Below, in pieces: positions 10,616-42,552 of a stretch of 64,000 nt of DNA (its first letter is position 1; each line of letters starts with the position of its first letter). The stretch is from Bugula neritina. Its lineage: Eukaryota > Animalia > Bryozoa. The stretch covers positions 13,501,801 to 13,565,800 of the forward strand of contig OZ037767.1 in the NCBI GenBank assembly GCA_964035545.1, read 5' to 3'. The position numbers were made by a program, and so were the translations under genes. A model generated the notes under the pieces. It saw nothing but the letters and a program-made list of their open reading frames with translations, was not told the DNA's origin and made no database searches.

Positions 10616-13600
10616 ATGACTTTCAGTCTCCTAATCTACTTTGTAAGTTTTTATTTAACTTGTGACTAAATGTAACTATTTGCTTTGCAAATTATGTTGA
10701 AAAATCGCTGCACACTTTTTCTATGCAATATTAAAATATTCATATATTTCTCAGCAGTCATTTAAATATTGTTTGGTGGTTGTATGTACAACCAGCTTTG
10801 TTTTGTAATAACTTTTGTGAAAATATGTCTTTGGAATTTCTGATTGCTTACTGATGAGTGGTAATATGAGACCAAAAGTAGTAATATAGCCAACTTTCAT
10901 TGCATGACATCTTTATTTGCTGCAATAACAACTGCGCTTGCTTGAAAGTTCCAACTTCAAATTTTTAAGTCAAGCACTTTTAATATCAAATATAACTTTT
11001 AAAGGTTGATAATTAAGAAAAAATTAAACACTGTTGTTAGTGTTCTAAAATGTTTTTGTTATAATTTTGCTTCAAAAGCAATATAGTATAGTAAACATAC
11101 TTTTTACTAGTTAAGTAAAATAATTGGAGATTTTCCTTTTAAGAAATTTATACAAAAGAACAGTTTTTGCAGAATTATGTCAATGAAGTTATTCTCTTTC
11201 AGATAAGCATTCTAATGACTTCTGTTATTGGAACGCAGTACTTCCAATATACTCATGAAGATGGCACTTTAAAAAGGTACTTAAAACTTAATGCGCATGA
11301 AAAGTATTTTACTAGTACTGCCTAGGCTGCAAAAATATTTACATTTCCTACTCATTAAAACTTTAACACAGTCCTACTGCTTGCTACACAACTAGATATC
11401 ATATTGTGAAATGTTCAAAACTAATGACTAAATAATAAATCTGATATAGAACTTGCTAATTACTTTTTTTTCTGAAGTTGTTTTAGATATAGCATGAATA
11501 AAATTCAACTCGAGTTAATTTGCAGATAATTTGAATCGACTTCTATTACCAGTGCACGTAAAGTGTCAAACAATGTGTTACCCAATAGAAAATTTTATAA
11601 TTAAAGTGAAAAGTTTTAATTTAGGGTATTTATATATAGGCTACTGGCTAAATACCAACATTTATCATGTGCTTTCAAATCTACTTTATTTAGCATGTAG
11701 GTGCTTGCTTTTTCTTTTTGAACTAAAGATAAAAATCAATTTATTTGTTTTTAACAGAATCAGATTGGGAAGCTTCAGACGGTTAGGTGAAATGGGTCTG
11801 TCTCCTGTCATAGAAATTGGTATAGTTTCTCCCTCGAGTGATGACTCACTGTTCATCAGAACTCAAAACGTTATGAGGGTTGCTAAAGGATTGGAGAGTC
11901 CGGGATTTATTAACTATGTCAACACTCCTTATCACCAACCCACTGTCGATGGCAAAGATCTGGACGCTGTTGTTGTTAATGAAAGTTTAGTGTTTTTTAC
12001 CGACTCGAGTAACCATGTCATACGAACTTTGAATCTAAGAAGTCCGAGTACTTGTTGCCCTGTGTATGCAGGAACTGGAGCAACTGGTGTTGTTAATAGT
12101 CGTAGAGAAACTTCTAGATTTACATTTCCTCGATCATTGGCTGTTGATTTAAAAGGAGCAAAACTGTTTATAAAAGAAAGGTCATCTCATTTACGTCAAA
12201 TTGATTTTACAACAGAGATGGTATCAACAGTATACCAAAACTCTCTTATAGAAATAGCTTGGTCAATCTTTTACTCTATGAATATTATCTTTTTCACAAA
12301 TTCTACCGACGTTTATGAACTAAATTTGGGTACTTTTACGTTTGCACGCACTGCTAGTTCAGCAACTGTTTTTACAAACATCACGGCACAAACTACGCTG
12401 ATAGATTCCAACCTCTTAGCTCTGTCGGATTCCGGAAAACTGAAAGTTATCAACTTGCGATCTAGGAATGTTTCAAGTGTCGAATGCCCAAGCAATTCTG
12501 CTAGTTGTTACCCAGAAAATTCAGTTGCTCTCCAATGGACTAACAGGTACCTGTATTGCGTTGGCAGCAATAATTACCTGTACAAGTCAGAAGGTAAGCT
12601 TATTGAAAAGCAGATTTGCTACTGCACCCAGTATGCAGTCCAGGGCTGGGGTCAATTACATGTGAACGTAGTTAATTACAATCACAATTACATGAAAATT
12701 TGTCAATTACAATTACAATTATAATTATTACAGTCAAATAGCAATTTAATTATTTACAATTACAATTACATGGCAATGTAATTAATTACAATAGCAATTA
12801 CTTTTGTTCTCACAAGAGATAAATAGAAGTTATGCAATTTCACTTCTAGGGTTCAACTAGCAGGGGCAATTTTGACAGTGGTGAACCTCCTTTATTCTCA
12901 GCAGTGATACTGTACTACATTGAATTAATCTGAACTTTCTATTTAGCAGTGGGCATGGTAGAATAAGTATGAATATTTTAGGATTTTAAAGTTTGAAGTA
13001 ATTGACATGTTATTATAAAGTAATTGTAAAAATCAATTACATTAGATATGTAATTAATTACAATTACAATTACAATTACATTTTAAGTTTATACAAACAG
13101 TAACCACACTTTAATTTACAAGCATCCATTTGCATAATGCGAAGTCATGGAATGACAATGAAGCTTGTTCCATCATTTCACCATAAACTGTATGGGCAAC
13201 AAATTTTCACACTTATAATTATAAAAATATTAATTTTAAGCTTCTTTTATGTTACTTGAAAAGATTTATGCAAAGGAAAAGATGAAATAACTGGTCTATA
13301 AGAATATTATAAAGACAAAAGTAATAAAGATTAGGCATTTTTCAAAAAATAGTTGTTCATTGTTCATATAATAATATGACAACAGCAAGCTAAGGTCAAA
13401 ATTAAGCTTCCCAGTTTGCTATATAAAACATCAAAATAAAAATGAAAATTAGGAAAACCATTTAATTGAATTGGCTTAGTAGCTCATAAAAAATTACCCC
13501 AACTTTATCTAAAGGGTAAAGTTTTATGAGTTGCTAAACTAATTTGTTAAATTGGTTTTCTTAATAATTTTTATATAAAAATAAGAAGCCTAATTTGCCA

Positions 13601-42200: not shown

Positions 42201-42552
42201 ATACTGTATAACTAGTGTGTGTAATACTGTATAATAAGTGTGTGTTTGGTGCGTATGTGTTCAATGAAATATGTATTAAAATCATAGTAGCTTACTGAGG
42301 TAAGGTAATACTGTTTTTTCACTTACAGTAAATAAAATTTGCATTTAAAATTGTGAACAGCAATTGATTGATGAAAAACAGGCATTTTAGACATGAATAT
42401 GTTGATGTTTATCCTGTTCAGATGAGTTTTGTTAAAAATTGTTCAGAAATTTAATTATTTTTGTAGGAGCTGCTTACAGAGTACAAGGAAGTCTAGCAGC
42501 TAATATTACAGTTATTCTTATAATTTTCTTTTTTGGTCACATCCTGGAATAG
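36227..42552 (+). CDS. Putative GPI-anchored paralogue: signal peptide, beta-propeller, 4-Cys module, 3 EGF-like repeats (589 aa, 9 exons)
   Basis: Exons 36227-36265 (MIFSRLLFFCYLQ), 36649-36701 (VLLHIIYC/STV..), 37151-38007, 38617-38797, 39216-39382, 40738-40872, 41191-41310, 41772-41903 and 42467-42552 (GAAYRVQGSLAANITVILIIFFFGHILE*) give a 1770-nt open frame. Intron phases 0,2,1,2,1,1.. are the same as in the 10616-32724 gene. Shared motifs: RIR(L/I), D.DAV.V..S...TD....IR, CC.(V/I)(Y/F)A, P..L.VD, YC....KW, G.YVFY. Confidence 0.88.
38407..38510. repeat. Imperfect palindrome
   Basis: CTATTGGACAAATTTAGTTGTAG..ATAACTAGAG pairs with CTCTAGCTAT..CTACAACTAAATTTGTCTAATAG. Confidence 0.8.
39457..40424. 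mobile_element. ~970-bp non-autonomous DNA transposon (MITE), Tc1/mariner-pogo-like
   Basis: TIRs GGGGAAACCTGGGTGATATG / CATATCACCCAGGTTTCCCC, each flanked by TA. Internal copies of GGGTGATATGGACC at ~39485, 39826, 39849, 40249 and inverted at ~40218. No transposase ORF. Confidence 0.85.
41905..42245. repeat. 22-bp minisatellite TACTGTATAATAAGTGTGTGTAA
   Basis: ~15 units beginning at the donor at 41904. Confidence 0.95.

Follow-up and report, generated by a model that had tools for sequence, protein, structure and literature searches.

Predicted NHL propeller heads on EGF stalks of unequal length in a tandem gene pair of the bryozoan Bugula neritina

What kind of protein is encoded by two adjacent genes that follow a single blueprint, yet carry 25 EGF (epidermal growth factor-like) exons in one case and three in the other? 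The question is raised by a stretch of chromosome 3 of Bugula neritina, 64,000 nucleotides (nt) long (contig OZ037767.1 of assembly GCA_964035545.1, positions 13,501,801 to 13,565,800 of the forward strand), which is referred to below as the window and comes from an AT-rich genome of 216.0 Mb. An earlier note, made from the letters of the window alone, had proposed a lineage-specific family of surface recognition proteins, in which divergent beta-propeller heads are held at different heights above the membrane by EGF stalks and a glycosylphosphatidylinositol (GPI) anchor. Our analysis indicates that the two genes are intact tandem duplicates. They probably encode a pair of extracellular mosaic proteins, located at the cell surface or in the matrix, with a propeller head on an EGF spacer and a hydrophobic C-terminal peptide. 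In gene 2 this peptide would be of the GPI type; that of gene 1 could be a GPI signal or could span the membrane over a short length.

Both genes consist of a putative split signal peptide, one exon for the head, two exons for a cysteine (Cys) module, a series of phase 1-1 EGF exons and a short hydrophobic last exon. This common exon and phase blueprint of two same-strand paralogues had been described in the earlier note, and all of its elements were found. The models comprise 31 exons in gene 1 and nine in gene 2; AG/GT flanks are present at every splice site, the phases are compatible and the frame is open. When spliced, gene 1 gives 4458 nt, corresponding to 1485 codons without an internal stop. 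The frame of gene 2 runs uninterrupted from its head exon as far as the stop, and the model has 589 codons with the best-scoring 5' exons, which were picked by splice score. Alternative 5' exons of gene 2 at about 36770-36944 had splice scores below the filter, and the pair starting at 36227 and 36649, which scored best, also resembles gene 1. Directly after the start codon, both genes encode a hydrophobic core, as in a signal peptide, with Kyte-Doolittle hydropathy (KD) values of 2.3-2.7 by a hydropathy heuristic (2.48 for the core of gene 1). No further exons or domains between the modelled ones, and no further large open reading frames (ORFs) in the locus, were found. The features of the pair are as follows.

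10616-32724 (gene 1) and 36227-42552 (gene 2), + strand: the gene pair, Bugula neritina chromosome 3.
10616..10642, + strand: gene 1 exon 1, ATG and putative first half of the signal peptide, MTFSLLIYF; ends in phase 0, before a GT donor (10643); homologue of the first exon of gene 2.
11203..11276, + strand: gene 1 exon 2, 74 nt, remainder of the putative signal peptide, then TQ...; ends in phase 2, with AG/GT flanks.
11758..12593, + strand: gene 1 head exon, 836 nt, 278 codons, ending in phase 1; predicted divergent six-bladed NHL propeller.
13652..13826, + strand: gene 1 module A, 175 nt, encoding the first 2-Cys repeat; starts in phase 1, ends in phase 2.
14787..14953, + strand: gene 1 module B, 167 nt, encoding the second 2-Cys repeat; starts in phase 2, ends in phase 1.
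15935..32110, + strand: gene 1 EGF stalk, 25 phase 1-1 exons of 108-129 nt each.
15935-16057, 16918-17040, 17782-17910, 18698-18820, 19976-20104, 20490-20612, 21174-21299, 22178-22285, 22575-22697, 23113-23232, 24142-24264, 24524-24652, 25461-25583, + strand: gene 1 EGF exons 1-13.
26114-26236, 26873-26995, 27114-27236, 27817-27939, 28105-28233, 28826-28948, 29207-29329, 29624-29746, 30338-30460, 30910-31032, 31208-31330, 31997-32110, + strand: gene 1 EGF exons 14-25.
32621..32724, + strand: gene 1 last exon, hydrophobic tail and stop; GPI-like or a short membrane span.
36227..36265, + strand: gene 2 exon 1, MIFSRLLFFCYLQ; ends in phase 0; part of the best-scoring 5' combination; its beginning (MIFSRLLFF) is similar to gene 1 exon 1.
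36649..36701, + strand: gene 2 exon 2, VLLHIIYCSTVLDKDKV; 53 nt; ends in phase 2.
37151..38007, + strand: gene 2 head exon, 857 nt, 285 codons, ending in phase 1; predicted NHL-type propeller, paralogue of the gene 1 head.
38617..38797, + strand: gene 2 module A, 181 nt; starts in phase 1, ends in phase 2.
39216..39382, + strand: gene 2 module B, 167 nt; starts in phase 2, ends in phase 1.
40738..41903, + strand: gene 2 EGF stalk, phase 1-1 exons 40738-40872, 41191-41310 and 41772-41903, without the calcium-binding N-terminal motif.
42467..42552, + strand: gene 2 last exon, (G)AAYRVQGSLAANITVILIIFFFGHILE and stop; GPI-signal-like tail.

The two heads are homologous over their full length, with about 26-28% identity (E 1e-20), and not, as had been thought, related through scattered motifs only. 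A profile built from the two heads was compared with 1.84 billion representative sequences and gave 3652 matches at E<=1e-3, and all seven of the matches that were tested for domains carry Pfam NHL or TEN_NHL. Beyond the copies from a sibling lineage of B. neritina, which were the only close ones, the matches are thousands of long repeat proteins, in which a single matched stretch spans only 2-4 blades and high scores build up by summing over repeats; no close relative from outside Bugula was present in this search. A word-index protein search with the gene 1 head returned a single item, a 93%-identical genomic contig of the sibling lineage. The language-model features of the same head (ESM Atlas) scored 0.96 to NHL clusters, and a structure search in the same resource gave a template-modelling (TM) score of 0.80 over 270 of 278 residues to NHL and TEN_NHL clusters.

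Structure prediction with AlphaFold2 and a Foldseek search, both suggested in the earlier note, were run on the head alone. The gene 1 head was modelled as a six-bladed NHL propeller with a mean predicted local distance difference test score (pLDDT) of 84.7 and a predicted TM score of 0.85 when the alignment contained 52 sequences, namely the heads, NHL exons of the same genome and collinear segments of the profile matches. The top PDB matches of this model in Foldseek were the NHL domains of teneurin, PknD/Pizza6, Lin41, Thin and Brat, and the best structural matches from Foldseek and ESM Atlas together were NHL propellers with TM scores of 0.7-0.8. Three observations speak against such an assignment. 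In a Pfam hmmscan of both head ORFs there was no NHL match at E<=1, the NHL model staying below threshold; AlphaFold2 with an alignment of three sequences reached a pLDDT of 45 only; and the good model leans towards the NHL fold because its alignment was built from NHL sequences. Since three independent lines (profile search, language-model features, and AlphaFold2 with Foldseek) agree in spite of this leaning, the head is assigned, on sequence and model grounds, to a very divergent six-bladed NHL propeller. The propeller proposed in the earlier note is thus borne out, and its fold is a recognisable one.

A single-exon NHL propeller of ~280 residues has at least 123 matches in the genome. These exons are concentrated at C2 24-33 Mb, C7 13.4-14.7 Mb and C8 7.7-8.0 Mb; many of them are densely packed in tandem, and in-frame stops interrupt some. 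The heads of the pair match the NHL exons of their own genome weakly (E 1e-4) and have in common with them a C-terminal C-x(n)-C loop and the ending ...Y.G....[YF]K.SG. In a phylogenetic tree, the pair and its sibling-lineage copies form a clade with support of 100/99, situated on a long branch of its own; the duplication therefore predates the split of the sibling lineages. Both genes have been kept one-to-one in the sibling lineage.

Each of the two module exons encodes one copy of a ~55-residue repeat with two cysteines, so that every gene has two copies. The repeat follows the pattern C-x(~35)-G-x-Y-x-[YF]-x(4-8)-C and continues with a beta-strand-like C-x-x-[VIL]-x-[LIV]. The two exons of the supposed 4-Cys module are therefore present, and the module itself is really two tandem copies of one 2-Cys repeat. 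Each module exon has its homologue in the other gene (E 3e-6 and 1e-4). They have no match in Pfam; in the language-model search of the Atlas the scores remained under 0.8 without a convincing neighbour, and a module profile found no relative among PDB sequences (E 1.1). Single module exons searched against their own genome matched only themselves. With the module profile, the four copies of the pair and four further copies on chromosome 8 (13.218-13.234 Mb) were detected, and nothing else convincing. By these sequence comparisons the 2-Cys module, which is probably disulfide-bonded, is an orphan, and it may be a new small extracellular domain.

C8:13218871-13234939, minus strand: chromosome 8 locus with two NHL-like heads and four copies of the 2-Cys module (loci L040, L057 and L060).

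The chromosome 8 modules lie downstream of the two NHL-like heads, which are too diverged to be placed in the tree. Like the pair, the chromosome 8 genes have a related head with this C-terminal Cys loop, which ends in ...G in a compatible phase and is followed by the 2-Cys module; unlike the pair, they show no EGF motif within the 80 kb examined. Among the genes with this kind of head and module, the chromosome 3 pair alone has an EGF stalk.

A regular-expression scan of the window detected 28 six-Cys EGF motifs, all on the + strand, with 25 of them in 15946-32106 and three in 40749-41875; the remainder of the window and the minus strand gave no such motif in the same scan. Each motif has its own AG/GT-flanked phase 1-1 exon, in agreement with the 25 and three EGFs counted in the earlier note. 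Where two possible acceptors lie 6 nt apart, the upstream choice restores the D-x-D-E-C start. All nine EGF exons that were sampled match Pfam EGF_CA or EGF_3, EGF_CA being above the cut-off in six of the nine. The start D/N-x-D/N-E/Q-C is present in 23 of the 25 EGFs of gene 1, and 19 of the 25 have the full calcium-binding consensus (Asn/aromatic), whereas none of the three EGFs of gene 2 has the calcium-binding N-terminal motif. The calcium-binding EGF arrays assumed previously therefore hold for gene 1 and not for gene 2. Pairs of calcium-binding EGF domains measure about 2.5-3 nm per domain, are stiffened by calcium and form stiff rods. By this measure the rod of gene 1 would be roughly 70 nm long, and the stalk of gene 2 would be under 10 nm. 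Pairwise nucleotide identity among the EGF exons is at most 63%, with no effect of neighbourhood, and the exons thus appear to be old and without recent duplication. Since all of them are symmetrical, skipping of an exon would keep the frame.

The tails of the two proteins differ in how well they resemble an attachment signal. The protein of gene 2 ends in ...TKGAAYRVQGSLAANITVILIIFFFGHILE, in which the small residues G-A-A are followed by a short polar spacer (four residues, YRVQ, by script, and up to seven by eye) and by a hydrophobic run that extends to one residue before the C-terminus (KD 2.18 over 19 residues). Its exon is the only one with a phase-1 acceptor and a hydrophobic segment between 41904 and 45900, before the next gene. 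By rule of thumb the sequence is plausible as a good GPI signal. The tail of gene 1 has a hydrophobic core of 15-19 residues with KD 1.6-2.0 (1.6 over 19 residues). E, R, N and D occur in this tail, and the core is followed by 11 residues, the first of which is R; such features are atypical of a GPI signal and count against an anchor of this kind in gene 1. Its sequence is ambiguous between a weak GPI signal and a short membrane span with a minimal tail. The acceptor of the gene 1 last exon at 32621 scores 12.8, and every other phase-1 candidate with a hydrophobic segment up to position 36200 has a weaker one; the alternatives at 32654 and 32656, with scores of 3.1 and -2.0, were rejected. The hydrophobic ORF at 35413-35535 was considered as a membrane-span exon of gene 1 and discarded, having neither an acceptor nor a pyrimidine tract and being preceded by ATTGG/CCAAT motifs. 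Thus, the GPI anchor that the earlier note gave to both proteins is plausible for gene 2 and ambiguous for gene 1, and its hydrophobic last exon without a cytoplasmic tail fits gene 2, where the run reaches the last residue but one, and fits gene 1 poorly.

These tails bear directly on whether the proteins are tethered at all. They might instead be secreted matrix proteins, fibulin- or fibrillin-like rods with a propeller at the end, whose hydrophobic C-termini would be parts of the mature protein or mispredicted 3' ends. Long calcium-binding EGF arrays are indeed typical of matrix proteins, the gene 1 tail is only moderately hydrophobic and holds charged residues, and the search of RNA runs yielded none that would define the 3' ends. 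Against this, both paralogues end in a separate short hydrophobic phase-1 exon in spite of the 26% identity of their heads, the gene 2 tail is strongly hydrophobic almost to its last residue, and in neither region does any acceptor score better than that of the predicted last exon. An untethered pair is therefore rather unlikely, and a head and spacer with a C-terminal hydrophobic peptide is retained as the probable design.

Selection on the heads was assessed, as the earlier note had suggested, by substitution ratios and by allelic diversity. Logan contigs from the runs SRR4020080/83/84 (one accession series), taken to be a B. neritina metagenome of the sibling lineage, contain orthologues of both head exons with 91-94% nucleotide identity. 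The head exons show no indels against these contigs, whereas the flanking introns are 81-87% identical and have indels. The ratio of nonsynonymous to synonymous substitution rates (dN/dS) of the gene 1 head is 0.26 against the sibling-lineage contig, and the corresponding nonsynonymous and synonymous proportions (pN/pS) for the gene 2 head against the sibling contigs are 0.058/0.204, a ratio of about 0.28. Within the species, a genomic DNA run of another individual, used for the gene 2 head only, gave 13 single-nucleotide polymorphisms, five nonsynonymous and eight synonymous (pN/pS about 0.18). The heads thus appear from these comparisons to be under purifying selection, between lineages and, in the case of the gene 2 head, within the species, and are conserved rather than hypervariable.

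These values weaken the proposal of a diversified allorecognition or immune system with divergent heads at different heights. Such a system could explain why the heads are only 26-28% identical while the blueprint has been kept, and the symmetrical EGF exons could, by skipping, vary the length of the stalk. However, selection on the heads is purifying at both levels, the EGF exons lack recent duplications, and both genes have one-to-one counterparts in the sibling lineage. The family at this locus has two members, and whole-genome searches found no further close copy. The self/non-self or microbe-sensing role offered in the earlier note finds no support in the selection comparisons, and a diversified recognition system appears decidedly improbable. 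Because the heads are conserved and not hypervariable, a role in adhesion, the matrix or reception with a fixed ligand is likelier than a diversified recognition repertoire, and the old EGF exons together with purifying selection on the heads make the pair look like two proteins of fixed function. With no marks of a diversifying recognition system, the importance of the pair probably lies in bryozoan cell-surface and matrix biology rather than in a general principle.

There is also good reason to regard the exons as coding sequence. Besides the lack of indels in the head exons, the splice sites are conserved in the sibling lineage; in the sibling contig, exon 2 of gene 2 has kept its AG and GT and contains a sole indel of 3 nt, in frame, whereas the intron indels measure 6, 13 and 2 nt. 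Two results point the other way. The search of RNA runs gave one run, with genomic unitigs that cross the gene 2 introns and no joints, and no transcript-derived protein with either head was present in the protein collections searched. That the genes are unexpressed relics or artefacts of modelling, with real exons that do not belong to one transcript as modelled, would agree with this absence of transcript evidence from the run and protein searches, but is very improbable in view of 31 and nine exons with an open frame, canonical splice sites and compatible phases, of the same order and phases in two long-diverged paralogues, and of a dN/dS well below 1, head exons free of indels and splice sites conserved in the sibling lineage.

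For the extracellular mosaic favoured here, the parts would work together as follows. A cleavable signal peptide would send both proteins outside the cell, where the NHL propeller, with the two small modules, may act as a ligand-binding head. The EGF array would serve as a spacer, placing the head far from the cell surface or matrix in gene 1 and near to it in gene 2, and the C-terminal peptide of gene 2 would direct attachment to a GPI anchor, while that of gene 1 would act either in this way or as a very short membrane span. The design probably arose by exon shuffling that brought together a single-exon NHL propeller, of the kind massively expanded in this genome, and EGF exons with symmetrical phase 1-1 ends, and would be an example of this process in a little-studied phylum. 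A bolder proposal, which we consider unlikely, sees in the pair the branch with EGF stalks of a surface-receptor family that is peculiar to bryozoans and has a private NHL head and a new 2-Cys domain; the two genes would serve as a 'molecular ruler' in contact sensing between zooids, colonies or symbionts. If this were true, the cell would set the height of the head at ~70 nm or at <10 nm, and in gene 1 the height would be tunable by skipping any of the 25 EGF exons.

The non-coding parts of the locus and its neighbours show several further features. Within gene 1, a periodic tract (14184-14552) lies in the module intron and a GT-rich tract (32110-32310) just after the last EGF exon. A tandem repeat with a unit of ~39 nt and ~14 copies (33413-33958) separates the two genes, and paired ATTGG and CCAAT motifs (35410-35445), ~800 nt upstream of the start codon of gene 2, may be a promoter element. 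In the intron of gene 2 between module B and the first EGF exon, the summed contig depth at 39400-40600 is 900-3600, compared with ~110-140 elsewhere, with many loose ends, and this segment is a high-copy repeat, probably a transposable element; the last intron of gene 2 contains a ~45-nt repeat (41910-42240). Upstream of the pair, the + strand ORF 7515-7793 weakly resembles the hemicentin galactose-binding-like domain, with 26.7 bits against the 27-bit Pfam cut-off, and the + strand ORF 8552-9046 has no match; together they may represent another extracellular gene. Downstream, on the minus strand at window positions 45879-62079, lies a KNTC1/Rod kinetochore gene, whose ORFs match Pfam domains of KNTC1 (the N-terminal one and, of the ARM-repeat domains, the first and the third).

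Among known systems, the NHL-repeat propellers (Pfam PF01436/PF25021), such as the teneurin NHL domain, the PknD sensor and the TRIM-NHL proteins Brat and Lin41, have the same predicted fold as the head of the pair and a detectable kinship to it, although the head is too divergent for the Pfam NHL model and stands on its own long branch. In the RING/B-box ligases the propeller is C-terminal, whereas in the pair it is N-terminal, after the signal peptide and before the Cys modules and EGFs. To our knowledge, EGF repeats and an NHL propeller occur together in no well-known surface protein of animals other than the teneurins, whose NHL domains are among the best structural matches to the head. 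Teneurins are type II membrane proteins in which the EGFs precede the propeller, and they also have TTR, FN-plug, YD-shell and toxin-like domains. The pair has the reverse order, a putative C-terminal anchor and no YD shell, and because of the opposite order and orientation and the missing YD shell it is not a teneurin.

The layout of Hedgehog-interacting protein (HHIP) is analogous, being close to that of gene 2. HHIP has a signal peptide, a six-bladed propeller, EGF domains and a C-terminal hydrophobic anchor; a Frizzled-like domain precedes its propeller, which belongs to the glucose/sorbosone-dehydrogenase type. The hmmscan of the heads gave no Pfam match of the HHIP type (glucose/sorbosone-dehydrogenase or Frizzled-like), and this is a likeness of design rather than a demonstrated kinship. 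The 23 tandem EGFs with a calcium-binding motif in gene 1, one per phase 1-1 exon, resemble those of fibrillin, fibulin and LTBP. Unlike fibrillin and LTBP, the pair lacks TB/8-Cys domains and has an N-terminal propeller and a hydrophobic tail, and the absence of a TB domain sets it apart from fibrillin. Nor is the head an LDLR/nidogen unit, because it lacks YWTD: there is no Pfam match to Ldl_recept_b (YWTD) on the heads, and their neighbours in structure and sequence are NHL. The separation from fibrillin, LRP/nidogen and teneurin that the earlier note had drawn is therefore upheld. A literature search on NHL with EGF and GPI, and on NHL repeats in bryozoans, found nothing relevant, and an architecture of signal peptide, NHL propeller, two 2-Cys modules, EGF stalk and hydrophobic tail was not found described or in the sequence collections. 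Compared with all of these systems, the architecture of the pair is a new mosaic of known NHL and EGF parts with an orphan module, so far specific to Bugula.

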